A DNA stretch of 63,946 nt, counting the filler, from Polymyxa betae A26-41 (Eukaryota > Protista > Endomyxa: Phytomyxea): assembly GCA_003693705.1 (NCBI GenBank). It is 5 parts of 5 records of this genome, joined end to end, with 100 filler letters (N's around TTAATTAATTAA, not from the genome) between each part and the next. Parts side by side here need not be neighbours in the genome. Positions count along the whole stretch, not along the records: positions 23,476 to 51,468 come from RBZT01000356.1; 4 more parts are not named here. One strand, written 5' to 3'. Of this stretch, positions 24,883 to 51,318 are shown in pieces. How positions within the stretch are numbered: the stretch's first letter is position 1; every line of letters starts with the position of its first letter. The notes under the pieces were generated by a model. The model was not told the origin of the DNA. It searched no databases and saw nothing but the letters and a program-made list of their open reading frames with translations. The position numbers and the translations under genes are program-made.

Positions 24883-26348
24883 ATGTCCAAGAGCAAGGCT
24901 GATGTTTACGCCGAGGCTCGGGGTCGAAGGCCTCAGAAGGAGTTTGCCGATCTGTCGGCATTGCTCTGGGGCGCCCTGCGCCGCCGGGCCTGGCAGTCGG
25001 CTGGCGAGGTGCTGCGCGCAATCGGGGCCGTCTTCGATCAGATGCCCATCGATTTCATGAAGGGCGCCGTCGAAGTCACGAGGCGTCGATTCTCGGCCGA
25101 ACGCATCTGTAAATTCCTCAGACAGGTTCAAGCCATTCAGGATAAAAACCCGGGAGAGAATGAGTTCGTGCAGACAAAATATTATGTAGGCTGTGAATGG
25201 TTCCCAATCATGTTTAAAGTTTTCTCTGGTTTTATCTTCATGCTTTGAATTATTATATTCTGCAAATGTTTTCAGTGGTTCCTTGTTCGGTTTCCAGAAA
25301 TGTTATTGAATTTTTGATTTTTCGGTTCGGTAATGATTGGACAGAGGGCGTATATTGTGGCAGAGGTCGCCTTCCATTTGTGTCGTATGGGTTATCTATC
25401 TCAGGCCTATGAGAACATGAAAGCGGCGGCCGTCCACGAAAAGTTCGCCTCGATAGCGTTATTCCATGCTTACACCGGGATCTTAGGCGTTGAACTTGCC
25501 AACAACGCTGCCGATCCGGATAGTCCTGAAAATAGGACCATCCTCAACGATTCCGTCCAAGCCTTACGAAGGGCTCTTGAACTGGCCCATCATTGTGATG
25601 TCGTTCTGCTCTATTTAACAGATGTCGCTGTGCGTTACCCCCATCTCGGTATCGAAGCCCACAATGAGATCGCCCAATTCACTGCGCGAAATCCAACTAG
25701 CCCTTACGCGCGTCGCTTTCATTTCAACTATGTCAAACATCATGGTAGCAATGACGATCTATTTGACGCTGGCTTCGAAGTATTGATGCTGGATCCGGCA
25801 TCTTCTGTATTTAACGATCTCGTCGAACTCTCTGACAAAAACCTTGTTGATCCGGGAAGGATGACGACCCTTTGCATACACCGACTACAGTATACACTGT
25901 TGGACCTGTCAGCCTGGAGGACATTAGCCGTACTGCTTCCGAATGTCAGCGAGGTCACCGTGCCCGAAGACTGGTGGCTTGATATGCATTTTCGACATCC
26001 GCGGGCGCTGGCCCGAGAGCTCGGGCTGCCGTTCGAGGAACCGGAATATATTGGCTCTAATCTTCCAGGTACGATTACAGACCTCGATCGAGTTGCCTGA
26101 TTGTGGTCGTTCACCTTTTGATAGCGCTGTCTAATGACGAATCATCGGAGATTCTGGATGCGCTTGTTTACAAGACCATCTGCGCCAGCTATTTCCTGCA
26201 TGAAGGATCCGAATCGCGGTTCGTGGTGGACACGATCGGAGCTCTGCTTGAAGGCGAACAGATGGGTCGCGTTGATCGAATCCGCGACGGGATTTCCCAG
26301 GCGTCGATGAATCGGGCGAAAAAACGTAGAACGTCGTCCGCTGTGTAA
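24883..26348 (+). CDS. TPR-like protein resembling the RNA Pol I SL1 subunit TAF1A/Rrn11 (~3 exons)
   Basis: AYTGIL, NPTSPYARRFHFNYVK, LSAWRTLAVLL and WWLDMHF parallel TAF1A motifs (AYKGLL, NPNAHIYLYNFLK, AWKYLAKYL, WWPGFHF) in the same order. Introns at ~25162-25346 and ~26069-26124. Confidence 0.65.
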
Positions 26349-33330: not shown

Positions 33331-33811
33331 TCTGCTGCATACGTAGACGATAAGTCGCCTACGTAATCGGAATGCCCTGTGTGAAGGACAACATGATTTG
33401 CTATTTCCATTTCATTCTACAATGCGCCTTTGCATGTCGAATGGGTGAAGTTATCGTCGTCAAGAATATGCACTCATTTACATCCACGATAAAAAAATAC
33501 GTTCAATCCTTGAATGGCCGTACTGGCCCGCTATCCAATGGAGATATCAGCTGTGATATCTCCGACATGCAGTATTGTATTCACATCTGCAACCTGCAGA
33601 CAGAGTGAAGCAGACGGTTTAGCTCTCATGATTTGCCCTTGGATGGGAATTGTCATAGCTCGGTACCTGACCAGAAAGAATGGTCGATGGGTTAGAAACC
33701 CTAACCGCCTTATGGCGATATTATGATCGAGGTCACTATGAATGCGCCGACTCCTTCTCATTCCAGTCTCTTATAGCTGCGCTGATGACAAGCCACTCTG
33801 CTGGTTGAATC

Positions 33812-36800
33812 TCAGTCTCCTCCCTCCCCCTTGATCAGATAGGCGGATGGGCGAACGTACCTGGAATATGATTGTCATAAACGCTGAGAAGATAGGGAAT
33901 ATGTGTTTGGAAACCCTAATGAGTGTCAAGGTTGAAGTTGAATGTATTAATCGACGTTGATAAATAGGGTTAGGGAATTTAATCCGCTGAATTGCTTGGA
34001 TGACTTTTACCCTTTGGTGGGAATGATTTCGGAAGTTTCTTGCCCTATTGTTTGCGTCTTGAACTTTTCTTTGACGACGGTGACACTCTCTCCCGCTACT
34101 GAATGAGTGTGGCATTCACCTGTCGCCAGATCGATAGTGCACCCGCCAGCAGCCGCATATGGACATTGCGGTAGCAATTGCGGCATGTAGAACTGACTTG
34201 GAAAATGCAGCTCGAAAGGCTTCTCGACGGCGGACTTGATCCATTGCAGTTGAAGCGCGGCATCGGGACAATAGCGCTTGGAAGAATTTCGACTCATGAG
34301 CCTTTTCACCGTACTCGTCACATTAGCTGGTGCGCGAGTTCTTGATAGATTCAGTTCGCCGCGTTTTGCCTAGATAAGATTAGAAGCAATGTGGAGTTGT
34401 TCCAGAGGCCTTACGGCCGTGGTATCAAGATGACACGATTCAGGTGTCAATAGGCGATAGATCATGGCACCAGCACTCCACATATCGGCTTTGGTATTAT
34501 ATCGCGAGCCTTGTTCAACTTCCGGAGCCACGTAGGAAAGCGTCTCACGATCCAACGCCGAGATGTGGAATTTTCTCAAACCGATATCGACCATCTATAA
34601 AATCCATCAGTGATGGGCATACAGGACACCAAACAGCAAAGTCTCCAAAAAAAATTAGAAAGGAAGTTGATCTTCCGAACAAAAAAGCAAACGCGTTTAA
34701 ACGTTTTTTAGCTGGAAAACCAGCTCAAATGAAAAGCCATCAGAACCGATTACCTGAATACGATGCTGCCTCAGTTTATCTAAGTGCAGAAGGATATTAC
34801 AAGGTCCCAAAACCCTAAACTTTCATATGAGAACGGCTGTACATTTGAGTACATGATTCGGATTACCCAAGGGCCATGCCGTGAGAATGCAAATATTTCA
34901 GGCCAGAAAAGACCTGACGCATGATCAAGGCAACACTGTTAAGCGACAGGACGCCGCACGCTCGAATGAGTTCATCAAGATGGACCCACCCTAAAAAATA
35001 TCATTTTCAACCAAACAAACAGTTGCATCCTAAACATCGGAAACAGTTTTTCGAGAAATAACCAACAGTCCGCAGCAGCAATTCATAAACAAAACAAAGT
35101 TCAAAAATTGATGAAGTTATGGGAACCCGAAATGACAATTACGTGGGATATGACGACGTATGACATAGATCTTGTAACGGTCTTCGTAGATAGCGACGGT
35201 GGAAGCGATGCATGGATGCTCGGCGAACCGAAGAACTCCAGCCTCCGTCCTTAGGGCGGCCAGGTCGGTCTCTTTAACCACTACAATATTGAAATCAAAA
35301 TAAGTTCACAGCACAATCGAACATATACGAACTCAATTTGTCGATATATTTCATCATGTATCGTTTGCCGGTATGAGCTCCTTTACATTCGAACACGTTG
35401 GGAAGACAAGGATGCACGACATGGCTCATATGATAATGTTCCTATGAGCATGAGTGAGAAGAACGACATTGCTGAAAAGCCAACAACAAAAGATGCTGCT
35501 AGAAAACCAGAGGAAAAGAAAGATCAAATCCAAAAATGTTCTGGGAAAGTGCAGCAAAAGCAACTTGTAGAACCAGGAGTCAGTAAAAGAAAGGCAAATG
35601 CAGAAGGCAGTCCAGAATACCAAAAACTCATTCAAAAGAGACCAAGATTCATTCAAAAAGAGAGAAAACTGAAAACTCCAGAACGCTCCAAATCTCATAA
35701 AGAGCCATTACCGCAAGAATGAAATTTCGGGAAGCAACCCGGATAGCTTTCACCCATGTATCGCGTTGTTCAGCAGTGTACACGAAGATGATTCGGGAAA
35801 TGTTCGACAGAGCTGAGACTAATCGAAAGGCGAACCGTGGCCGGGCGTTGTTGGGCAAGATAGGGTCGGAAACCTCTTCTCCCGTAACGAACGGGTTACA
35901 TGTCGCTCCAGACAGCGGCAGCACTAAATTTGGCTTCACAGATTCCTCTGTATGGAACGAGTACATCATGTTATTTCGAATCACGATCCAGCGTCGTTTC
36001 AAGCGCTAGAAAACCGTCACGAATCCAAACACATGAAGTAGTGACAGCTTACTCTCAAAAACCAGGTTTGCTTGAAGACGTAGCCGTGCATGGTCGCCGT
36101 ACTGCAAACATTGCTCTCGTGTTCCCCAATGAGAAGGTTTCGATCAGGATCGTCGCAATCGAAGTCGGATTGACGATAAAAGTTCAACGTGTGAATACAC
36201 GACGACGTCTCAGGTCCAGAGATACTGCAGATCATGTTAACACCTTGTATAATGATATCATGATAGAAGATTACCAATATTGAGGTGTTAAGGCTCGATC
36301 TAGGCAAACATAGCTATCAAGATTATGTGCATTCATACTATAGAGAGAATCAGCATTCGTATCAGGCGTTGTAAAACACGAAATTACCAGTATTCAGGGA
36401 AGGTGTATCGATGAAGGCACAGAAAGGTCCCTGCTACCGGGCATGTCTCGCAATCAGCGACATCGGTGGACGAGACCATCGGCATGATATGGAATCTCTG
36501 GTTCGGGATGACAGGCGGTAGATACGGGTCGGAGCAATGGCAGAGCAGGTCGCCAGATCGAATGGCGATCTCCAGGACGAAGGTTCGTAAATCGGCAAAA
36601 GTATCATGCTTGTCAACCTGACGTCAATGTTGAGGAATCGCCGAATACAGAGGCACACTCTAGCATTACCAGACCATACAAATCACCGGCCGGGATGAAG
36701 CCCGGTTTACCTCCATCATCCATAATCGTGTCAGCGATCTCTCTTGCCTGAATACATTCCTTCAGCACAAATGGCTGTGAAAAGAGACACAAAACATTGG

Positions 36801-37517
36801 AGGCAAAAGAAGAGCATAAAATCGACAGGAAACGAAAACCACAGCACTAATCTGTGGAAAGAAAAAAAATGAATTTGAAAAATCAGATAAAAATGAAAAA
36901 AACCACAGGAAATTCAACAATTACGAGCTATTTGTAGAAAGCAATGCGAATAAGAATACCTTGAGATCGGCCATCATGATATAGCCAGCATCATGGACGT
37001 TAACGCCCATCATATTGCAGGCACTATCAATAAGCAGATCGACAATGTGGATCAACTCGGGTCGATACACTTTGCGATCGAAACCGCCATAAAACATATC
37101 TCTCACTAAATCAATCTGAAAGCACAGCAGTAAGCTCAGATGAAAACATAATTTGATAAAACCGATTGAAAGTTTCATAAAACTGTCACCTTTTTGGAAC
37201 TTCTAGCATTCGTAAAGAGGCAAAGCGCCAGAAGGAAGTTGTTATAGTTGATGGCATCGCGATGGTAGTAATCAAACAGGTTAAATACATGTTCAGCCAC
37301 TTCCGGTCCTATAGCGAAGAGCTTGATGAAACTTGCCAGATCAATAGTCCGATCATGGCGCCGAGAGACGATCTCCCGGAATCGTCGGCGGATTGCAACG
37401 AAATCGTCGATCGCACAAACTGAGTGCTCGAGTAAGTCGTTTGAGGGCGCCAGACAAGGATGCCCACTAACAGAGCTGGCAGAATTCGATCGACTTGCAC
37501 AACACCAACGACGTCAT
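33812..37517 (-). CDS. EF-hand-PH-pseudokinase protein, paralogue A (CDPK7-like architecture)
   Basis: Start MTSLVLCKSIEFCQL|F. EF-like AEHVFNLFDYYHRDAINYNNFL. PH HGYVFKQT..KRRWIVIRNNMMYSF..EQRDTWVKAI. Kinase YMMKYIDK..LRTE..LKYLHSHGMALG|VLGPCNILL..VDIGL..YVAPE..KADMWSAG. The 3' end is 33812 if the last intron is spliced, otherwise 34007. Confidence 0.85.
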
Positions 37518-38355
37518 ACTCAGATTGCTTAAATGGGATTGTAAAGTTCATCGCATTCTTTGCAGCAGCAAGTTGCGTCAAAATTCATCCAGTTTTGAGC
37601 GCACAAACTGCGCGGAGAGTTCGTCGACTTTGGTGAGCGAACCGACTGTATGGAACATTCACAGTCAAGGTCAGAAACTGCGCACACATTTCATCCAGTG
37701 TTTTGTGTCCACGTCTTCTTTCATTGATTTTGGTGCATCACGGGAGAGTGGTAACTGACGACGTCGCTGCTGCATCTGGTCATGATACCCCTCAATCAAT
37801 CTCAGTTTTACAAATGCGCTTTCTCACCACTCGATTGACAAATAAAATCTGGTTCTATCCTGGAAAAACGTGTGATTGCGAACTTGATTGTGAAAGTATG
37901 AAGGTTGTTTATTGGCTTTCGGGTGAGAAGGACGGATCCGAATCGGCGCAGCAGGGCTGACATGAGTATCCACAATCATCGAAGCCGCACCTCTGTGATT
38001 AGGGCACGAATGAAATCGGCCCGCCAGTTGACACTTGACCCCATCTGCGGATCCCGGCGGAATCCCGCCGCCTTGCTGCTGCATAATACAGGCCAGACCC
38101 GCAACGGTTAGACTGTTCTTGTTACGGTGTACCTGAATAAGCGGCTGAAACTGCTGCTCACCTCGCTGCTGCATCTTCTCAGTAGTTTTCATTCAGTGGC
38201 GCCATTGCCAGCCTCAATTTCTATGCGGTTATTATCTCTCTGCTTTTGCGATTATCTTCGCTCTCTCTTTCTTTCTAATGCTGGATATCCGCTATGCTTG
38301 TCTGAGGGACTCGTCGGCAATCAACAGCAGTCGCGAAACCTGCGAAAACCTTAGA

Positions 38356-38750
38356 CAGCCTGGCCTGTAACCGATATTCGCCAAGCCGTTGACTGGGTTT
38401 GACCCGGGTCGAACCTGGGTTGGGCCCGGGTTGACTGAAAAAAATTCTAATAAACTTTCAACCCTTGGTGCAGGCCAAACATGAACTGCAGTCTTTTTAC
38501 ATCTTTTCAAAGTGTAAACGGTCGTGATTTGACAACCCAATCGATATTAAAGGAAAAGTAGCATTTCAAGAACAGTTATGATGAATTATCCCCGAACTCC
38601 CGAAGAGACCGGATAATTCCGTAAAATCAGTAAGATCGGGTCGAACCCGTTCGACCCAGTCAAGGTTCGACCCGACCGAAACCCGACCCGAGCCGATTCA
38701 CCTGACCCGGGTCCGACTCAGTCCGGCTCGGTCCGGCTCGGGTCGGGCTC
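38356..38750. repeat. hAT-like subterminal (G)ACCCG/CGGGT repeat cluster (MITE-like)
   Basis: Dense GACCCG/CGGGTC/TCGGG motifs at 38390-38435 and 38635-38750. No clean TIR or TSD found. Confidence 0.5.
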
Positions 38751-39110
38751 ATTTAGTGCGTGACTGACAATGACTGGCACTGGCAATAGGCATGACAAAA
38801 TGTGCGTGCAGTCATCGGTATCAACATGCCCCAGAAAGTGAAAAATGCGATTGAGAATTTGCAAAATAAAGTGCGTCTGGCCCAAAGTGCGCAACTTGCA
38901 ATTGTAACATTAGTTCGTGAGAAGTTGAACAGCCACCTGTCTGTCAGTTTGATCAGTTCCAACCAAGCAGTAAAGAGAATCTCGGCTGCAAGCGCACAAC
39001 TCGTATCTGCGCCAAGAATTTCGATTTCGCCATCCGAATCTGTCAGTTTCATCGGAGCTGCGCAGTCTCGTTCATTGCGTTTGCAGTCAGCAAACCCTCT
39101 GAGCGGCACG

Positions 39111-39656
39111 ATGCGGCTGAAACTGACCCGTCCACAGCTCATGCTGTCGTGCTTCCCCATCTTGATCACGGCCACGATGATTTTGAATCTGTTCCGAGGC
39201 CCGATAGATCCGGAGGCCGTGACGCCGCAGACGCTGGCCCATCTGATCGCAGCCGCAGGCCGGGACTTGGTCTCGCAGTTCAATCCGGACACGTACGCCC
39301 AATTAACCCGCATGCTGGACATCTGGCAGCGTAAATACCAGACGCGTCATTTGACAGGAAAATTTCGACGCGAAGTGCGCCGCACTCAGGCCCGGATGGA
39401 TGGGGCTCGCGGGCTTTTCCAGAATCAGATGCGCCGCGGACTCGCCGAGTTGCTGGCCCGATATGAAGAGGTCCGAAAGCAGGTCACAGCGGAAGCACTG
39501 CGGAGTTTGGAGCAGCTGCGAGACGAGTGGCTGCACCAGTTCGCCTGGTATATCTGGAGCACGGACGCCGCATTTCAGGAACGAGTCCGCCACGTACTGG
39601 CCGAGGTTGAACGGCTCCTGCGACAGAATCCGGGAGTAAACAAGGTCGTACAATAA
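39111..39656 (+). CDS. Small helical protein with N-terminal hydrophobic segment (181 aa), candidate secreted protein
   Basis: GC-rich intronless ORF from ATG 39111: MRLKLTRPQLMLSCFPILITATMILNLF, then amphipathic helices. The upstream in-frame extension has non-coding composition. Confidence 0.65.
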   Translation: MRLKLTRPQLMLSCFPILITATMILNLFRGPIDPEAVTPQTLAHLIAAAGRDLVSQFNPDTYAQLTRMLDIWQRKYQTRHLTGKFRREVRRTQARMDGARGLFQNQMRRGLAELLARYEEVRKQVTAEALRSLEQLRDEWLHQFAWYIWSTDAAFQERVRHVLAEVERLLRQNPGVNKVVQ

Positions 39657-39861
39657 CGTTACCGCACATCTTTGTATCTTTCGAGGTTCAAACGTCGTAA
39701 CGCTTACGGAACGTCATAAGGCTCCGTGTTCAGCAAATTCCAAGGGTTAACGGAACCGACTGAAATTGTTGAACATTGCAGCGTAGAGAAAACGTTACAT
39801 AATTACGTTACAAAGTTCCGATTATTGTTATTAAAATCTACTACCTAGTTTAGGCCGGTAA

Positions 39862-40193
39862 CAATCGTGCAGAAAATAGCGTAGAGCGCTGCTAGTCATT
39901 TAAATGATTCACACAAGTGGATAGTTTGCGTTACAGTTCAAGTTCAATCAAGTAACGAGATGAACAGTAACGATTATCATGTCAGCAGGGTCGGCGGTCG
40001 CTGGGAATGGGCGCGACCTGCTTCAGTTCTCCGGCCTCCGCGAGTTTGGTCGTACAATGATGCGTGGGTCCGTACACCTTTCCGCGAAAATTTTCAAATC
40101 TTGAATCGTAATTTCGGCAGCGTCATCTGGAAAGGCATCTGGGCCGCGTCGCAAATCCACCGCAACCGTAACGTATCAGAGGCGGAGTAGCGC
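39862..40193 (-). pseudogene. Duplicated 3' end of pseudokinase paralogue B
   Basis: High identity to ~45250-45614 (last coding exon plus 3' flank), with a ~35-bp deletion spanning the stop codon and small indels. Confidence 0.9.
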
Positions 40194-41454
40194 GGAAGTA
40201 ATGCTGTAATTGAGGCCATGTATGATGCCGAGAACGAGTGACATTAATCCTCCCAGCCTGTTCTGAATTACAAGTTGACATCCGTGATTTAACATCGCTT
40301 TCTCTCTTGATCACAAACAGCTAATCACAACGCTCCTTTCAAGCTGCAATATTGTCTACTTTTGAGCAATTGAATACCGGTTGATCGTGCAGAAAATGGC
40401 GGCTTGATCTATCTGCCTTAATGCTGTACTTAGCAAAAATCTGGATATTTGCCGTGACGAAGGCAAAGATCAAACGATATTTGGATCGCGGGTCGCCAGT
40501 CATTGAATACTGCACGAGAGAGAGAGAGAGAATAAAGGCTGAGGAGGTGCTTGCGTCTGATCATCTTCAGCAACCGTTTAGTTATTGACGGTTCCGCTGG
40601 CTCGTCTGCAGCGTCGGGCCCGACTCCGACGCCGCTGCCAACGATGTCGTTGCGTTCGTTGTTAATCAACTTCCAGGTTTGAAATGTTTGGATGTCTGCA
40701 GCTCATCGGTTTATATTGGAATCTCTTCGTCTTTAGAGGGTAGGGAATCCGGCCCGAAGGCATCCGGTACAGAAAACAGGAACTGTTCATGATTGATACG
40801 AAAGGACACTTCGCTATCCTTCAGAAAAGTCTGTATCTATCTATTTTTTATTATGTTTTTGGATCACAAATGCCTGCAAAAACCATGCTCCTTTGTAAAG
40901 CTTTAATAAAAAACAGATTTCACGGTAATTGCAAATAAGAAACAATGTTGTTATTTCCATACTTCATATGCCTTGTATACTTTTTTGTCGTCGCAATAAA
41001 GAATCTCCTCCGATTCGTTTCGTGAAAATCGTTGCTGATGTGGATTCCCGTCATGATGATCTGAACAGTACAAATGCAAGCAATATAACGATTCTTTCGG
41101 CTTGTTGTCAAGGCCCCGACAATGGGGCAACCCCATCAGCGCTGTAAGCACGATAAGTGATAACCTTAGGATAGCCAAGATTCCCACAACGAGAGCTGAA
41201 GAAAAAACTACATGGGTCCTGGACCCATACAAAATCAGGATGTTATCTGATATCCGTTTCTGGGATTTCTTACGGGCTTAAAGCGTTAGGTGGCTGGAGG
41301 CTATAGAGAGTCTGAACACCAGAAGCGATCTACTTTGTCTATCTAAGAGCTTGTCAAGTTATTCGAACAAACCAGCGAATAGTGAAACGACTAATGTACA
41401 GGAATCTCAGAGTGAATTTCATAAAAACTTTATTGATGCATCGGACAAGACAGA

Positions 41455-42396
41455 TCACCTGCGGAAGAGCGATTCTGGACGGAAATGATAGGCCCGGGTG
41501 TTGCTGGTCAGATTCGTGAATCGATGTTTCTGTGCAATAAGTCGGTAAACGAACCCCTGACAGCCTTCCTTTCCATCATAGCAGATCCTGGTCGATTGTA
41601 GATCATCGAAGATCATATTCGCACAGGATAGATCCCATTTATAGCTCACAAAGCTGATCAGATCTTCGAAGACTTGTCTCCTATCAGGTCGAACAATCAT
41701 CGATTTCCCAATCCAGCGATTATTCAGAAATGAATCTTTCCCCGATCTATCATCTTGGGTGAAAATCTCCTGAATGCTCACGCCAGATGCATATCCTGTA
41801 ATCAGCCAGAACATCCATCTTGTCGATTTCGAACTTTGCTTGATGATATCGGCAAAGTGCTGCAGACCGATTCGAGGCAGGTTTGGACTCCAGCCGAACC
41901 GTCCCAGATCCGAGGCGATTTTCCTTTTCGCAGATTGAAGCGTTTTCGGTAGCGAATGCCTCTCACAGAACACGGCGACTTCGGTAAAGCACGTGAAGAC
42001 GCTGATCGAGCTGAGCAGATTATCGCAGAGCTTCGCGGCTCCATCCGACATCATAAAATCAGCGATATGAGCGACCGCCAGGACGTCATCAGGACGATCC
42101 GCGCTCAGCTTGACCAGGCCGTACACGACCTTGAGATAGAGTTCGAAGCAGGACGTCTTATCGCATTTGGCGTGGAAAGAGAAACAGGAATCAGGGAGGT
42201 CGATGGTGACAGATTTCATGGCATTGGCGACTTCGAGTCCATCTGCTTGCCAATGCAGAAATTGCTCCAGATAACGACTAGCAGGACACATGACGACCCG
42301 ATGACATTGGAACGATCGATCGCCGACAACCAGCACCAGATCGCAGCATTGCCCATTGTTGTAGAGAGCGTTGACGATCGTCTCGGCGTTGAACAT
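41455..42396 (-). CDS. BTB/POZ (BACK-like) domain protein, 313 aa, intronless
   Basis: LYNNGQCCDLVLVVGDRSFQCHRVVMCPASRYL..FELYLKVVYG..VLAVAHIADFM..LCDNLL. Confidence 0.88.
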   Translation of the reverse strand: MFNAETIVNALYNNGQCCDLVLVVGDRSFQCHRVVMCPASRYLEQFLHWQADGLEVANAMKSVTIDLPDSCFSFHAKCDKTSCFELYLKVVYGLVKLSADRPDDVLAVAHIADFMMSDGAAKLCDNLLSSISVFTCFTEVAVFCERHSLPKTLQSAKRKIASDLGRFGWSPNLPRIGLQHFADIIKQSSKSTRWMFWLITGYASGVSIQEIFTQDDRSGKDSFLNNRWIGKSMIVRPDRRQVFEDLISFVSYKWDLSCANMIFDDLQSTRICYDGKEGCQGFVYRLIAQKHRFTNLTSNTRAYHFRPESLFRR

Positions 42397-43257
42397 GGCG
42401 AGCGATGGGCGTTCTGCTGGATCTGTCTTGCGAATGGGTTGACGATTAGATGGTAATAAGGGATATTATACCATGTGGTGATGGAGCGATCCGCTGCCCC
42501 GATTGGATCAGAATTGAGACGAAGCATTGCGTATTCATCGCATTGGAAAGTTCATGCGAATCGATTGAGGAAGATTGTTAGAACTTTGGTGGCGATCAAC
42601 TAACAACAAACAGCCAACAGAACATTGGTTGACAATAGATGGGTTTTAACTGGGAGAAAACGTACTCAAAAGCCAGATAGAGGCACATAAACTTACATTC
42701 GATGACTTGAGAAATCGAGCTGATAATTGGAATATTAAATACCAACGGTATCAAATTTCGGCTCGAAAAAAACCAAAGGATAAAAGGATCCTGCTGTACT
42801 TTACTGAAAGTTGAATGGTAAGGCTCATTTTAGGAGATGATGAAATAATATAACAGAGCGGGATGCAAAATCATTCCTCGTGCTACTTTTCTACTTTCGG
42901 AAAACAAAAGTAGAGCACAGTTTAAGAGTTAAACATGAATAAACATCCTTTACTCAAATACTATTGTGAGAGTTTTTGTTTTTCACACAAAGTGAATTCG
43001 ACTTCAACAAATTCCAGCCTGCAAGTAACGATTCTACAGTTTTGTTGGAAGAATTTGAGCGGCAAGACGGATAGAGAGGACATACTCCTGCCATTGCTTA
43101 CATGACTGATTTCATCTTCATTGAAGAGTCTCCTATCTGTCAGAGTATAAATGGTACCGCCAATCCATCACAGATAAACCCTTCCTTGGATCACACGAAA
43201 TCAATCGTAGCTGTATACGCAGAATGGTCCAGAATAGCTTCTTGTTCGGCGTAATTC

Positions 43258-43677
43258 ATGTTGACGATGTCGAGGAAGTGCTGTGAAGCCGACCAATGCA
43301 AATTGGAGACGATTCTCGGTTGTCTTCTTCAGGCGTTTTCGGTAGACACGCCTCGGGCAATCTCAGTTACAGAATCCAACGAAATTCAGACGATTATCAC
43401 AGAGCAGTACAGCTGTTACAGATATCTTGAAATGAGTAATCTCAGCGATCGCCAACGACTCTTGCCAATGCTGATGTTTACATATAGGCTTATGCAGGCC
43501 CTGCTTAAGCACGTAGAGGGTAATGCTGAACTCACTGATCTCGTTCGGGAAGCGGAGAGCCAGTATGCCCCCAACTACCATTATCAGGCGGATCGATTCT
43601 CCCGAGTTCACAATCGTCAACGGCTCCGTTTCCATCTGAAGAGCACTGCCGAATTCGCTCCAGCTAATAACGACTAG
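43258..43677 (+). CDS. Hypothetical protein or gene fragment
   Basis: 139-aa ORF with helical-looking composition followed by AT-rich DNA. No motif recognised. Confidence 0.3.
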   Translation: MLTMSRKCCEADQCKLETILGCLLQAFSVDTPRAISVTESNEIQTIITEQYSCYRYLEMSNLSDRQRLLPMLMFTYRLMQALLKHVEGNAELTDLVREAESQYAPNYHYQADRFSRVHNRQRLRFHLKSTAEFAPANND

Positions 43678-43899
43678 CTGGAATCATCTTTGGCCATTGA
43701 CACGGCGAAGATGGGGGAATCGCAATCCGACTAAACCGACCTCACTTTCAATAACAATCCCATAGAAAACAGCTAAAAGAAGTGGAACACCATCAGATCT
43801 TAATGAATATAAGGAATAATCGACTTCAAAACAACAAAAAAAAAACATCGAATTAGAAGAAAACAAATTGAATTAACAGTTATGTGTCAGAGACGCATT

Positions 43900-44490
43900 C
43901 GAGCAAAGAGCAGATCAATACGATGCCAGAGCAAGAGATCATCCGGACGAATATCCTTGAAGCGCTTACGAGATGCAATTTCCATCGCAACGACGCTCTT
44001 GCAAAACATAGAATTGATCAGTTGATAGCAGAACGCCCAGATATCTCTATATGGACAGATGGCAGCCTGTGTCGCTTCACTAATAAGGTAGAATCAGGCG
44101 CAGCTGCCATTATCAATATCTTAAATCTTGACCTTCTCAGCACAATCTTTGAACTCGAAATCCAGAGTACTTTTGAAACCTGGGAAATACAACGTCTAGC
44201 AACGAGATTGAGATCACGGCTTTACAGGCGTGATTAGAGACTATATTGGCACTAAATCCATGTGAGCGACACATCCATAGACTCCCTGTCATGTCTACAG
44301 CATACTATACCATACAAATTCTATTATACAAATTCAGTAGTGAAAGACGTTGCAGAGAAATTCGCCAGTTTTGAAATGCAGCAAACTCTGTTGATTGTAT
44401 CCCGAGCTATACAGAACAAATTCCAGAGAGCAACCGAGTTGATAGCCTCGCCAAAAACGCTAATCGCGACGAAATTTCGTCCTACCAGCT
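43900..44490 (+). mobile_element. RNase H relic of a non-LTR retrotransposon
   Basis: ISIWTDGS..SGAAAII..E..DSLSCLQ, frameshifted. Confidence 0.6.
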
Positions 44491-44699
44491 GAGTTTTAAC
44501 GGCCCTGCCTGCTAAGTCCGTATATCTACAACCCGGGTTCCATCGTTATAGATTGCTGTCTGTATTCTCCCTTTATGATTATTGCGTCATGCTTTCACGC
44601 CTGGCTATTTCGAGCTCAGGTTCGATCCATCACTGTCGAGTCCATCTTTGATGGTATCGCCTGCTGTGATTTATTCTCTCAGTGAAGAACTGAAAGATA

Positions 44700-45050
44700 A
44701 TGTTTCAATGAACAATGTTTGTGAGGGCGATTCCCCCGTCGGAACAGTGTTTCGGTCATTAGCAGTCGCTAGGCAAGAATGCGATCAGTTTTTTCTTGCT
44801 TTCCACTGTACCAGAATAGCACAAAATTTGAAGTTTGTAAACTTGTGTTGTTTCCGGGCTGGAACAATTCTATCAAGAAAAGAGTCGAAAGTCAATAAAA
44901 CATTTCAAAGGGAGCGGGAGACCAAAAAATGCAATTGTCCTTTTATCATCAAGCTCGCGCAGTGCTCCGATCACGCTTATATAAGAGCTATAAAACGAAC
45001 ACAATCACGAATGGTGAAATGATGACGAATCGGCGGTACTGGCTCAGAAT
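44700..45050 (+). mobile_element. FAR1/WRKY-like DNA-binding fragment of a MULE
   Basis: VGTVFRSL..C.RAG..RETKKCNCPFIIKL..HNH. Confidence 0.6.
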
Positions 45051-45403
45051 ATAATTCATTCCTAGAGGCGTTCAGATAAGATGCTGGAATTGGGAACAGC
45101 CTCGGTTTGCTATCATGCGCCCAAAAAATGACTCTGATTGTAAACGAGCACTTTTTGATGACTAAAAACCAAGGACAGGATGTGCCACGGAGTATCGGTT
45201 ATCAGGGTAGACACGGTACTATTTAGTCTTTCAGGCTCGTAAAGTTCATAATCGTGCAAAAAAAATAGCGTCGAGCGCTGATCGTCATTAAATGATTCAC
45301 AAAGTGGATAGATTACGTTACAGTTGAAGTTCAGTCAAGTAACGAGATGAACAGTAACGATTATCATGTGTATTTGTAAACAATGTTGCGGCACTGCGCC
45401 TGA

Positions 45404-48400
45404 TCAGCAGGGTCGGCCGTCGCTGGGAATGGGCGCGACCTGCTTCAGTTCTCCGGCCTCCGCGAGTTGGGTCGTACAATGATGCGTGGGTCCGTACACC
45501 TGTCCGCGGAAATTGTCAATCTTTAATCGTAATTTCGGCAGCGTCATCTGGAAAGGCATCTGGGCCGCGTCGCAAATCCACCGCAACCGTAACGTATCAG
45601 ACGCGGAGTAGCGCCGTGACGGATTCCGGTTCAGCAGCCGCTTTAGAGTGTTTAAGACTTCCGGGCTACCCTGAGTCCGTATCAAATCCAGCTTGTCATC
45701 TTTCGCCTAAAAGGATAACGTAAGCGGGTAACGTAGCGTGCAGTCAGATTATGTTACGGCTTTCAGGTTGTTGAGGTTGGAGCCCGGCGTCAGCAGGCGG
45801 TATATGATGGCGCCGACGCTCCACATATCGGCCTTGGGACCGAACTGCGCGCGGAGTTCGGCCTCCGGGGCAATAAACGAATGCGTCTCGTCGTCCAGCG
45901 CCGATACGAAGAACTTTCGCAGTCCGATATCAACCAACTATTGCATGAGTTAAACCGCAGTCAGGAGCAAAATATGCGAGAATCGAAAACTGAAGAGCAA
46001 TTTGAAATATTACAAAACCATTGATCAGAAAGCAAGTCCGAACACGGGGAGGCGAGTGCACGTCCCGAAAACCTTTCAAATAGAAGCAAGTCGAAAAGTG
46101 AAAATGCGCCGATATTTGCAGCCCCATTGCAGAATTTTGATAAGTAAATACAAATTGTCAAGTGTGTGACGTCAGAGGAACGAAGATCAGAAGCGAAACT
46201 GCGCAATGATTTTCATAACAGTGCAAAATGCGAGAAAATAGTGCGCAGTGTCAAAAAGTGCGATAAAAATGCGAAGTCACTTGCCTGAATGCGATGCGGA
46301 CGAAGCCGATCAAGTTCAACGACGATATTGGCGGGTCCGAAGGCGCTGCAAGACGCATCAGTTTGCTGTCCGTTCGAGGTGATCGTACATACCCGAGTAC
46401 CATCCCGTGACTATGAAGGAACTGCAGCCCGGCTATGGCCTGGCGCATGATCAGCGCCACACTATTGACCGACATGGTTCCGCCCACGCCTATAATCTCA
46501 TCTAGACGAACCCAACCTACATAGTCATGTTAGCTCAACTGTTTTCGATGAATTTTTTTGAAAAATATTTGATTAACATTTCTTTGCAGGTTTGAATGAG
46601 AATCTCGAAAGGAAATGTGAAGACAAACGTGTTGGAAAAGATTGAGAAATGAGTTCATATTACGGGGAATGAAGTGCCTTAAGATGTAAATCTTAGCGCG
46701 GTCTTCATATATAGCCACAGATTGGGCAATATCGTGGTGATCGGCGAATCGCAGAACGCCGCATTCCGTGCGCAACGAGGCCAGATCGTTTTCCTTCACC
46801 ACTACGGCTCAGTATCAGTTTGTTGATGATGCCCCCGACGGACGAGTACGAACAAGATTTGTCGATAAATTTCAGCATATAATGATGACCGGTCATTGCT
46901 CCTTTACATTCGAACACGTTAGGGAGACAGGGATGCACTAGACTGCTCATTTGATAATGATCCTAAGACAAACAAACACCCGTGGTTAGGTTTCATGAAA
47001 TTCAAAATGTTGAATTTCAAGAAACAAAATTAAAGACAAAGGTAAAAAAAGCGAAACTGAACGACCACATATTCACGATTCTGAAAATTTTAAAGTCGAT
47101 AAAAACACTTCTAATAAAAAGTAAAATTGTCACAGAGTATCAGAGAGGAGTATTCAAGAGAATTCTTACTGCAAGGTCGAAAATTGCGGCGGCGATGCGG
47201 ACAGCGCGGATCCATCGATCTCGCTGTTCGGCAGTCTGAAGATAGATAATACGCGCCAAGTTGGCCAGCGGCGAGACGAGCTTCAAGGCGAAGCGCGGTT
47301 TGGTGGCCTCTGGCGTCACTTCGTCCGGAATCGGATCGCAAAGCGCTCCGCATAACGGTATCACAATATTCGGCTTCATGGACGTCTCCTTATGGAACGA
47401 GTACAGCATGTTGTTGCGGATTACGACCCAGCGACGTTTCAACCGCTAACTAGGGTTTTAGGGTTTCGTTGGGTCGGATTTCCAGTAAACTTACATTCAG
47501 AAACCAGGTCTGTTTGTAGACGTAGCCTTGGATGGGAGACAAGCATTCTTCGGACTCCCATGGCCGCTGTCCGTTCAGTCTAGGATGTAACGTTTCGATG
47601 GTTGCGCCGGTAACGTAAATCCCCGTACCTGGATTCCGGAAAGATGTAGCGATGCAGGTCGTCGTCCACCCGGAGCGTCCTCGCATTCGATTTCTGGAAA
47701 AGGTTCGTTGCATTGGTGGCTCCACTGGCGACGCTCAAAGCGAAATCTTGCAGCTCGACGAACGTGTTATTGACTTCGATCTGACATCACTGGGTCAGAA
47801 GATCCGGCGACAGGAGACATCGAAGATGTCGTTACCAACTGATAGAGCTCCTTGAGCGTGACCCAATCGCGGACTTTCAGCTTACTGAGCAGTATGTCGA
47901 CGACCTCATTCGCCTGAAACTATGCCTCAACAAATGCCGAACAGCCGCCACGACAAAATTCTAAAAGGATAAAAATGGTTTTTTGTAAATAAAAATTGCG
48001 AAAATATGATTATTGAAAACAAAAACAGCTGTTGTGAAAACGTGAAAACAAACAATAAAACAGGACGAATGAAACATAAAAAAAAGGATTTCGGAACGAT
48101 AAAAGATTCGGAGTCGTGGAAACGTTCTGCTAATTTGGAAAGATTTGAAAGAAAACGCGAAACTTTGTGAAACATTTCAGTGCAGTTCAGCGCCAATCGG
48201 CCGCACCTTGATATCGGCATTGTTGATATACTCGGGATCGTGAATGTTGACGGTCATCAAGTTACAGGCGTTGTCGATGACCAAATCCACGATGTGGAGC
48301 AGTTCGGGGCGGTAAACCTCCCGATCGTTCCCAACACAGAAGATCTCGCGAATCCTGTATCGGTCGGACCAGATATCGAATTTAATTACATCAATCGCAC

Positions 48401-48995
48401 TTACAAATCCACCTGCTGAACGTCAACGTCGATGCCATATAACAGCTGGCAGACTTCGCGAAACTTTGGTAAAAAGAAAATCCAAAATTAAAATAGACAG
48501 TACCCAATAGCAAAGGAGTTTGAATTGTATTTGAGACACTGCTGAGACTTGAACTTTGATAAACAATCAATTTTTTTACAAACTTTGGAAACAGTCTTCA
48601 AAACAAAGTTTGATAAAACATTGTCGAAAATTTGACGTTAGTTTTAGAAACACGAGAAAATACCTTCTCTTCAGTCGGCGCCTTCGTGAAAGTACAGAAG
48701 GCCAGAAGAAAGTTGTTGTAGTTGATGAAATTCCTTTTGTAGTGATCGAAAACGTCAAAAACGTGTTCTGCGAGATGCGGTGCGATGGCGAATAGTTTCA
48801 GGAAATCGGCCCGATTGATGTTCCGCTGATTGGAGCGCCAGGCAATCTCCTGAAAGCGATGGCGAACATTGCCGAGATCCTCAACGGCGCGGACTGAGCA
48901 GATTGCCACCGTTAGGCCGTGATCGGATCGGGCCAAAAAGTTACCAGACAGAGGCGACAGAACTCAAGCGATTTAGAGATAGCCGAGGACGCCAT
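45404..48995 (-). CDS. EF-hand-PH-pseudokinase protein, paralogue B
   Basis: Start MASSAISKSLEFCRL|F. EF-like AEHVFDVFDHYKRNFINYNNFL. PH QGYVYKQT..KRRWVVIRNNMLYSF..EQRDRWIRAV. Kinase VHPCLPNV..YMLKFIDK..LRTE..LQFLHSHGMVLG|AFGPANIVV..VDIGL..FIAPE..KADMWSVG..LLNRNPSRRYSA. Exon structure parallels paralogue A. Confidence 0.87.
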
Positions 48996-51318
48996 TCAAA
49001 AACGATCGATTGATCACCGCTGATCGAGCAGACGTCAGAATCGCCTCACAGCTGACCTTTTAAAGCCACAAAATTCATCGATTTTGCTGCGCAAGTGGCG
49101 AGGAGAAGCTGCGCAAGTGGTGCGGAAATGTGCGCAACCGGCGCCAGAAGGCTTGGAAATTCTGCGCAACTCCGCACTTTTTGACTACCAAAGTCTGTTG
49201 ACAGCTGATTGTGGTTTCTGGGAGCGGCCGACATTGCTGCTGAGATGATGAAACCGTCTCGAATGTATTGATTCTGGAATTGCAGGATTCTATCTAAAGT
49301 CTCATTTTGGAACGTTTTTGAGTCTGCTCAGTTTTGTCAGCTGAATGATTTTTCGAATTTGTCTTTTTGCATTTGGTGCTTTCAGAGACAAGCTCAGCAA
49401 ACCGTCAATCGTGGCATATTTCATACAGGATGCAAAATTGCAACAGTTTTTGGCAGCTTGAATTACCTGATTTTGCAGCTTCTTCCCTAATTCGCCAATA
49501 TGTTTTAACTCTCGATTTCTACTTGATTCGGGTAACTAACGGTGAAATGTCGAAAACACGGGATATCAGATTCTCGGTTCTTCGACAGATTTCGGCATTT
49601 CCAGGCTGTAACCCCGATATCAGCGAGATGAAAAGAAGTGAATGGATTCATCAACATTGATTCGTAAATATAACAGACGGTGCTATCACCTTCAGCACAA
49701 GGCCATTCCTGCCGTTTTGCATTTGTTTTCGGAGAGTAGAATTACATCTCTGGTATGAGCAGCATAGAGCTGCTGTCAGTGGCCTATGATATGAGAAATT
49801 GTTCAATAAGGTGAATTTCCTTGAGATGGCGATGGAGGGAAAGCATAATGCACGTCCGCTCCCGACCACCGCCAGATCGCATAGGATTTGGTGGCCGCCC
49901 ATATCCATTCCAGCATCCTAAAGGGGTCTACATAAGCCCACACTGCTGCTGCAGGCGGTGTCAGTAGGGAGAGAGGGCGCTCCTCTAAACCATCCCGAAC
50001 GACTCCAATAGTTGGGGCGTCCGATAACAACAAGGGTTACTTAATGTAAACCGCGCCCTATCAGAGGAGTGAGAGCCGATAGATGACAGCTATCACTTCC
50101 AGCTATAATACAGAACTATGCGCCATTCATCTTGGTCTTCATGATACGATGTAATTTAATCGAAAATACTTCACCTATCTGTGTCTTGTATACAGCAAGC
50201 TAGCCAGCCTACCCTATAAACCAAGATATGTTAAAGATTCAGTATCAGATTGTGCCGAAAAACTGGCCATACTTGCCCAGAGCAACGCGATTGAGGTATA
50301 CTTCGTGGCAACTTACACTAAACCTCCCATGCCAGAAAGTCAACAAATCGACGGGCTGTCTAAGTCCGCATTGAAGAATGCCACCCCGTTAAACCACGAT
50401 CCATTTGTTTGCTCCAACCGATATCCATTTCAATGAGAAAACAAGAGAGAGCTTCCAATCTTACCTGAACAAAGCCATCACAGTAAGCCACTGTGCAAAC
50501 TAGCTGATCGACCGCCATACACATGATAGATACTCCGAGAGGATCGGAAACAAGACAGTTCAAATTGGAGTACACCATGACAGCTCCCTCCTTGATAGCG
50601 CCAGAACCGGTCATACCCAATGCAGCCCTAAACAGATGGGCATTGAGACACAAAGCAAATGCAGATTTTTTTATCGGAAATAAAACAAACTTTCAACCAC
50701 CTCCTCATAAAATGCGCCCATTTTCGAGAAAGCCTTGTCACGCGAACGATCCGCCTTTAGAAACCGCATCATAACAGACTGTAATAACAGCACTGTTGAA
50801 ACAGCAGAAATTCATGAATAAACTACCGCAGAAAGTTTACAATCACGGATGTCCAATTTAGTATACAATATGTTATAGAAGCTGTGAGACCAGCATGAGA
50901 TCGAAACATTGTTTGACTACAGGGTTCAACTCCCTTATGATTGGGCCAACAGATGGCTACACTTCAATGTCAGGTCTCTACGCTCTCTGTTGGGCTGAAG
51001 CTCACAAATTTCCCCCAAGCATTTAGGCCTCCGAAATATGATTCGTTGGAGAGCCACGGACTTCGTGTTGTGCCCCGAACTAGGGTTAAAGTGACGCCCA
51101 CCTTGCCGAAAGGCCCGGTAACAAGTACAATCCAATCTAATCCAAAATATGGAGAACCGAACCTAAAGCGAATGAAAATTGAGATAGAAGTTAGATCATC
51201 AGTATGACGGAGCAGATCACGGAATTTGAGATCAATCTACGAAATAATCACGCAGTTGATTCCGAAGACAGGTCTCGCTCCATTCTCATTCTGAAGCCGA
51301 TACTGTATCGCGACAACG

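Follow-up and report, generated by a model that had tools for sequence, protein, structure and literature searches.

Two adjacent genes of Polymyxa betae A26-41 resemble protein kinases and lack the usual catalytic motifs. The question raised by this locus is whether they encode working kinases, decaying copies, or proteins that are maintained for a purpose other than catalysis. The genes, called A and B here, lie in a stretch of 63,946 nucleotides (the window), which joins five parts of five records of the genome (GenBank assembly GCA_003693705.1). They are tandem neighbours on the minus strand of the piece at 23476-51468 (RBZT01000356.1), which has a G+C content of about 45%. Both proteins contain, in the same order, four degenerate EF-hand-like motifs, a linker, a PH domain, and a CAMK-type kinase-like domain. 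An earlier note, made from the DNA sequence alone, had proposed that the pair are conserved pseudokinases under purifying selection. The analysis supports this proposal: A and B are real, selected paralogues, and by sequence they fall within the definition of pseudokinases. The best overall explanation, to which a probability of about 0.72 is given, is that they belong to a conserved non-catalytic, PH-targeted pseudokinase family with a role as scaffold or regulator. The pair is of interest, yet it stays within what is known for kinase families, in which pseudokinases are common.

Kinase-like domain

The kinase-like domain of A and B is a member of the protein kinase superfamily as judged by profile and structure database matches, and it can be placed no finer than the CAMK group. 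Searches of Pfam, the PDB, and protein databases were run exon by exon, and joined spliced models were used for alignments and for the ratio of nonsynonymous to synonymous substitution rates (dN/dS). The exon-wise Pkinase matches are collinear and cover profile positions 39-80, 85-119, and 160-193. Exon 13 of A has a score of 33.7 bits to Pkinase (PF00069), above the cut-off of 31.7. The C-lobe of a third family member, C, has a Pkinase score of 61.4 bits (E 1.2e-16) and matches 772 PDB kinases at E <= 1e-3, the top matches being the CAMK-group kinases DRAK, DAPK, CaMKIV, and CDPK (E 5e-12 to 1e-10). The top PDB matches of the N-lobe are apicomplexan CDPK1s (E 5e-4). The best matches of the kinase domain (STK17A/B (DRAK), DAPK1-3, CaMKIV, and apicomplexan CDPK1/3) have the same order of subdomains from beta1 to XI. 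Unlike A and B, these kinases are all active, and none of them combines an N-terminal EF-like region with a PH domain.

The catalytic motifs have been replaced in both genes. The glycine loop (GxGxxGxV) is replaced by VHPC-LPNV, which is one residue shorter than the canonical loop and has two prolines and no glycine. HRDLKPEN has become LGVLGPCN in A and LGAFGPAN in B, with the loop Asn kept, and DFG has become DIG. In place of the catalytic Asp, A has Val and both B and C have Ala, and all three members have Gly at the catalytic-loop Lys. These replacements were found on the minus strand where the earlier note had placed them, and re-translation confirmed all of the motif coordinates (Table 1). 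The note was also correct that other elements are kept in both genes, namely the beta3 (VAIK) Lys (RYMMKYI in A, HYMLKFI in B), the alphaC Glu (LRTE), APE, and DMWS (DxWS). The subdomain XI Arg is kept as well, and the activation segment ET.S[YF][IV]APE is conserved.

Three alignments concur on which motifs are equivalent. They are a HMMER alignment to STK17B/A and CDPKs, a BLASTP alignment to P0005, a canonical PH-kinase from a JGI metagenome, and a four-way alignment that includes the spliced contig L003 of the same PH-kinase. GTGKFSAV is equivalent to HPC-LPNV in the comparisons with STK17B, CDPK, and P0005/L003, and the catalytic loop is also equivalent to HLDLKPQN. A deletion at the hinge and alphaD was suggested by a gap in a MAFFT alignment and was rejected, as a gapless alignment and the HMMER alignment fit equally well.

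The definition of a pseudokinase from sequence is the loss of at least one of the VAIK Lys, the HRD Asp, and the DFG Asp, and it applies to A, B, and C. The patterns HxDxKxxN, DxKxxN, and GxGxxGxV do not occur in any of the three sense frames of either locus, so there is no hidden alternative exon that restores the catalytic motifs. An alternative exon supplying HRD had been named in the earlier note as evidence that would count against its proposal. The three proteins are predicted to be incapable of canonical phosphotransfer, although the description of them as catalytically dead is a reading of their sequences.

Selection on the family

A and B are anciently duplicated paralogues in a tandem, same-strand arrangement, and they belong to a very rare eukaryotic family. 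Comparison of 33400-37700 with 45000-49400 by tblastx gives 13 collinear minus-strand blocks that are alike at the protein level, and the DNA between these blocks does not align. All 12 of the introns predicted in B have the same positions and phases as introns of A. The intron lengths differ between the genes and fall into a short class of 45-56 nt and a long class of 150-350 nt. The collinearity, the shared intron positions and phases, and the Pfam scores together show that the resemblance is not due to chance.

The proteins of A, B, and C are under purifying selection, with strong constraint across the entire kinase-like domain. Over 633 aligned codons, A and B share 53% identity, with identities of 0.64, 0.74, and 0.42 at the three codon positions. 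For the whole coding sequence (CDS), counting methods put their dN/dS at 0.13-0.21 and maximum likelihood gives lower values, with dS saturated. The three pairs among A, B, and C have 62-67% identity and dN/dS of 0.08-0.14, again with saturated dS. The expectation of the earlier note, a dN/dS well below 1, is therefore borne out. The longest run that is invariant among the three members is the 14-residue loop replacement VHPCLPNVFECKGA (shuffle P = 0.024). Seven codons of this run have synonymous differences, which indicates that the constraint is on the protein.

The third member came from public sequence data of another sample. An exhaustive phmmer search with the PH exon of A against 1.84 billion representative proteins gave five matches. 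Member C (P0001) is a 204-amino-acid Logan product of SRR18189689, where it comes from contig L001. This contig encodes, in turn, the PH domain, VHPCLPNVFECKGAHTG, LGALGPAN, VDIG, APE, and DMWS. It carries the identical VHPCLPNVFECKGA run, and its LG-ALGP stretch is contiguous. At the position of the beta3 Lys, C has Asn (YMVNYI; L001 1-1158). Four of the introns of A are absent from L001 and two are retained or present; the contig represents a transcript that is only partly spliced, or else a gene poorer in introns.

Further searches extended the family no further than this one additional carrier of VHPCLPNV. A word search with P0001 returned only P0001 itself, a scan of JGI metagenome contigs for VHPCLPNV and FECKGA[HM]T found no other member, and the ESM Atlas gave only generic PH and kinase clusters and no relatives. 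The single match of this metagenome scan, FECKGAHT in another contig (L002 1902-1949), was rejected as a chance hit within a 662-amino-acid bacterial heparinase-II/III-like open reading frame (ORF). The extreme rarity of the family, three sequences against the billions searched, points to an under-sampled eukaryote.

Gene models and transcripts

Gene A is expressed, and its transcript is spliced and polyadenylated. About 53-55% of the sampled words of 33900-37600 are present in four public runs, which is the value expected from the exons of A alone. Runs X4 and X6 each yield one contig, of 2379 and 2348 nt, with no mismatches to the window. Both contigs skip 13 CT..AC intervals (GT..AG on the minus strand) and have a poly(A) tail at 33920. 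All of the predicted introns of A are upheld by the contigs, including 34815-34866, the removal of which joins ...HSHGMALG to VLGPCN..., and the LG + VLGP junction proposed in the earlier note is thereby confirmed. Two raw-read runs with the same species label as those of the contigs, X12 and X15, gave no reads on gene A, a result that carries no weight either way.

The transcripts also corrected the gene structure. A predicted intron of 163 nt (intron 5) is in fact two 50-nt introns around a micro-exon that only the transcript contigs reveal; the corresponding site in B is occupied by one 49-nt intron. With the micro-exon, which could not be recognized when the earlier note was made, A has 14 exons. 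The span given in the earlier note contains both loci, and its start at 33812 lies about 108 nt beyond the poly(A) site.

The models of A and B were derived from ORF listing, tblastx, three-frame reading, and all frame-compatible GT/GC-AG introns between blocks. The reading frames are intact in both genes, across 13-14 exons. Predicted intron 11 of B (45938-46284, minus strand) starts with GCAAGT and would be of the GC-AG type; its counterpart in A is of the GT-AG type.

Table 1. Features of genes A and B. Positions are those of the window.
Feature	Position	Strand	Details
Gene A transcript	33920..37554	-	14 exons, 13 GT-AG introns; poly(A) site ~33920, 5' end at or beyond 37554; spliced contigs
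Gene A CDS, 747 amino acids	34007..37517	-	Gene model; every junction confirmed by transcript contigs
Gene A exons 1-7	37517-37472, 37419-37190, 37115-36960, 36747-36670, 36617-36388, 36337-36275, 36224-36053	-	
Gene A exons 8-14	36005-35712, 35441-35333, 35280-35143, 34990-34867, 34814-34754, 34594-34415, 34369-34007	-	
Micro-exon (63 nt) in linker of A	36275..36337	-	Two flanking 50-nt skips in contigs; no counterpart in B
Gene B predicted CDS, ~639 amino acids	45404..48995	-	Homology to A, identical intron phases
Gene B predicted exons 1-7	48995-48950, 48893-48664, 48344-48207 (acceptor uncertain), 47913-47836, 47780-47629, 47579-47495, 47445-47170	-	
Gene B predicted exons 8-13	46962-46854, 46801-46664, 46516-46393, 46345-46285, 45937-45758, 45706-45404	-	
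Four degenerate EF-hand-like motifs and linker start, A	36388..37419	-	EF1 and EF2 in exon 2, EF3 in exon 3, EF4 in exons 4-5
EF2 loop, A	37238-37273	-	DYYHRDAINYNN
EF2 loop, B	48712-48747	-	DHYKRNFINYNN
EF3 loops			YGGFDRKVYRPE (A), CVGNDREVYRPE (B)
EF4 loops			DGGKPGFIPAGD (A), KLKVRDWVTLKE (B)
PH domain, A	35712..36091	-	beta1 at end of exon 7, remainder in exon 8; Pfam PH (PF00169) 32.4 bits, cut-off 25.1
PH domain, B	47170..47533	-	Pfam PH 29.6 bits, cut-off 25.1
Kinase-like domain (CAMK-type, six exons) and C-terminal tail, A	34007..35441	-	Exon-wise Pfam Pkinase; CAMK-group PDB matches for member C
VHPCLPNV replacing GxGxxGxV, A	35394..35417	-	Translation; aligned to canonical kinases
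VHPCLPNV, B	46915..46938	-	Translation
Catalytic-loop replacement LG + VLGPCN, A	LG 34867-34871, VLGPCN 34796-34814	-	52-nt GT-AG intron 34815-34866
Catalytic-loop replacement LG + AFGPAN, B	LG 46393-46397, AFGPAN 46327-46345	-	47-nt intron 46346-46392
DIG replacing DFG, A	34580..34588	-	
DIG replacing DFG, B	45923..45931	-	

PH domain and EF-hand-like region

The PH domains of A and B score above the Pfam cut-off and are followed directly by the kinase-like fold. Their nearest solved relatives are the PH domains of the cytohesin/GRP1 type, the best match being cytohesin-2 (E 6.8e-4). A, B, and C all keep the basic signature K...KRRW (K-Xn-K-R-R) and the beta3 Tyr. The linker before the PH domain varies in length between A and B. 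In A (36053-36617, minus strand) it is much longer than in B and rich in Cys (CHC, CETC, and several single Cys); this Cys pattern is not conserved in B.

The N-terminal region of both proteins appears to be a degenerate EF-hand domain. Alignment to calcineurin B and NCS-1 and alignment of A with B identify four EF-like motifs in about 170 residues. The loop quoted in the earlier note is correct, and the region holds four such motifs instead of one. A canonical Ca2+ loop has Asp, Asn, or Ser at positions 1, 3, and 5, Gly at 6, and Glu or Asp at 12. None of the four motifs has this pattern, as the note had stated for the calcium ligands, and the EF1 loops of A and B have no Asp at position 1. 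The PDB matches of the N-terminal exon are exclusively EF-hand proteins (MICU3, hippocalcin, NCS-1, CBL2, calcineurin B, and neurocalcin). With a profile of A and B the result is the same for 17 of 17 PDB matches, with a best E of 0.0018. The AlphaFold (AF2) model of exon 2 of A (pLDDT 74) predicts two helix-loop-helix units with short paired strands. These lines of evidence from sequence and model are concordant and each of them is weak, suggesting rather than establishing an EF-hand identity. Four-EF proteins of the NCS and calcineurin-B-like kind are the only kind matched by the N-terminal exon. Unlike those proteins, A and B lack the 1-3-5-12 ligands in all four loops, have no myristoylation signal, and are fused to a PH domain and a pseudokinase.

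Proposed function of the family

The arrangement of domains suggests a membrane-bound scaffold or regulator. The PH domain, through its basic signature and conserved Tyr, would recruit A and B to phosphoinositide membranes, where the kinase-like fold could then serve as a non-catalytic scaffold or as an allosteric regulator. The kinase-like fold and the EF-like domain, presumed to be Ca2+-independent and of the NCS/calcineurin-B type, would both provide protein-binding surfaces. A likely partner would be a paralogue that is still active, or else a kinase upstream of the family, by which the ET.S[YF][IV]APE segment is phosphorylated. The former glycine loop is tightly constrained, and since VHPCLPNVFECKGA is the most constrained part of the protein, it has probably acquired a new role, in structure or in binding, at what was once the nucleotide pocket. 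Tribbles, CaMKv, and PSKH2 are CAMK-related pseudokinases that have a degraded glycine loop, degraded catalytic motifs, or both, and that serve as scaffolds. They differ from A and B in their accessory domains and substitutions, and no specific sequence relationship to them was found in this analysis.

Several observations weigh against this explanation. A and B retain the beta3 Lys, the alphaC Glu, the loop Asn, and the Asp of DFG, so that binding of nucleotide or metal, or an unconventional activity, is still conceivable. The family is very rare, with three known members. The model of gene B rests on homology to A, as the transcript evidence covers gene A. The only Pfam match of the N-terminal exon is EF-hand_6, at 12-13 bits against a cut-off of 25 (E about 0.1-0.2), and although almost all of the top 50 Foldseek matches of the exon 2 model are entries that contain EF-hands, their E values are 0.3 or higher.

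The small family combines a PH domain, an apparently calcium-blind EF-like domain, and a kinase fold in which the former ATP clamp is the most conserved part. It offers a natural case for studying what a kinase fold does after catalysis is lost, and how PH-kinases resembling CDPK7 might signal non-catalytically. Its practical value is modest at present.

Origin and alternative explanations

The order of domains is that of the apicomplexan kinase CDPK7, as the earlier note had pointed out. CDPK7 has two N-terminal EF motifs, a long linker, and a PH domain adjoining the C-terminal kinase domain; in Toxoplasma gondii and Plasmodium falciparum its PH domain binds phosphoinositides, and regulation by calcium is unproven (PMC7909640). 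A and B likewise have EF motifs, a linker, and a PH domain adjoining a C-terminal kinase domain of CAMK/CDPK type, and the likeness extends only to the order of domains. CDPK7 is both active and essential as a kinase, whereas in A and B the Asp and Lys of the catalytic loop have been lost, and the glycine loop with them. A literature search for a CDPK7-like pseudokinase found nothing specific.

Direct descent from an alveolate CDPK7 with loss of catalysis is a tentative proposal, and independent fusion of an NCS-like EF region to a PH-CAMK kinase is the competing origin. Descent is favoured by the published domain order (PMC7909640), by the apicomplexan CDPKs being the best solved relatives of the N-lobe, and by the existence of a canonical PH-kinase relative with identical PH-to-kinase spacing. 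The C-lobe, however, scores equally well with DRAK, DAPK, and CaMKIV. In addition, A and B have four EF motifs close to the PH domain, with a shorter linker, in place of two motifs and a long linker, and these proteins of 640-750 amino acids have no Gly2 for myristoylation, for which CDPK7 has a putative site.

The PH-kinase P0005/L003 is a canonical relative of the family. The identity over the PH and kinase domains is about 28%, and the spacing from the end of the PH domain to beta1 is identical. It differs in having a full set of motifs: GTGKFS, the VAIK Lys, HRDLKPEN, and DFG. An EF region cannot be seen, but the contig ends 5 nt upstream of its start. A 37-nt intron directly after HRDL (L003 699-735) lies close to, but not exactly at, the site of the catalytic-loop intron of A and B, with an offset of 7 nt.

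A mechanistic variant of the scaffold explanation is that the proteins bind ATP and Mg2+ as a conformational switch and transfer no phosphate. STRADalpha, ILK, and JAK JH2 are precedents for nucleotide-binding pseudokinases. The strong constraint on the kinase-like domain and the conservation in A and B of the beta3 Lys, alphaC Glu, loop Asn, and DIG Asp are consistent with a switch. The Asn of member C in place of the beta3 Lys is not, and a loop without Gly, with two Pro, and one residue short argues against a normal phosphate-binding clamp. From these sequence features residual nucleotide binding in A and B is possible and classical catalysis is unlikely, and a nucleotide switch is somewhat improbable as the main function.

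A more specific and rather speculative idea concerns the loop replacement itself. The His/Cys/Pro hairpin of VHPCLPNVFECKGA might be a newly evolved functional element, for example a sensor of metal, redox state, or a ligand, or a docking surface. If so, the small family would represent a novel class of sensor, targeted by a PH domain and based on a kinase fold, from an almost unsampled eukaryotic lineage.

It is quite unlikely that A and B are atypical active kinases, or other nucleotide-dependent enzymes, with a displaced catalytic residue. WNK, CASK, and SelO are precedents for unexpected activity of this kind, and the ATP-site residues kept in A and B and the strong selection on the former active-site region could be read in the same way. 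However, none of the three members has the catalytic base, the loop Lys, or any of the loop glycines, the alignments show no nearby Asp or Lys that would evidently compensate, and C lacks the beta3 Lys as well.

That the genes are decaying pseudogenes, or that the motifs are artefacts of a wrong exon model, is very improbable, because the frameshifted B fragment nearby, the weak exon 3 acceptor of B, and its GC-AG intron are set against frames intact over 13-14 exons, dN/dS of about 0.1, an exact full-length spliced poly(A) transcript for A, and a critical stretch that is contiguous in C. For A, this reading is already contradicted by the evidence.

Other features of the piece

Pfam searches of 20 ORFs that flank A and B gave only BTB, a sub-threshold TAF1_subA match, and a sub-threshold ZGRF1 match, and no Rfam families were found in the piece. 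The match to TAF1_subA (RNA polymerase I TAF subunit A), with E 0.0089 and a score of 15.8 bits where the cut-off is 31.8, is from a 255-amino-acid ORF at 25333-26100 on the plus strand and is too weak to inform taxonomy. An intact single-exon ORF of 313 amino acids at 41458-42396 (minus strand) has an N-terminal BTB/POZ domain (Pfam E 5.2e-8). A word search of 5.8 billion proteins gave no homologue at E <= 1e-3, a result that suggests a lineage with little sampling, and public assemblies contain no exact record of the ORF.

A partial copy of gene B lies between A and B at 39863-40193 on the minus strand. It corresponds to the last exon and 3' untranslated region of B (45250-45614), and blastn gives 96% identity over the last 212 nt of the CDS and 90% over the untranslated region, with a gap of about 35 nt. 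The copy is frameshifted, with tblastn matches in two frames, and it looks like a recent gene fragment.

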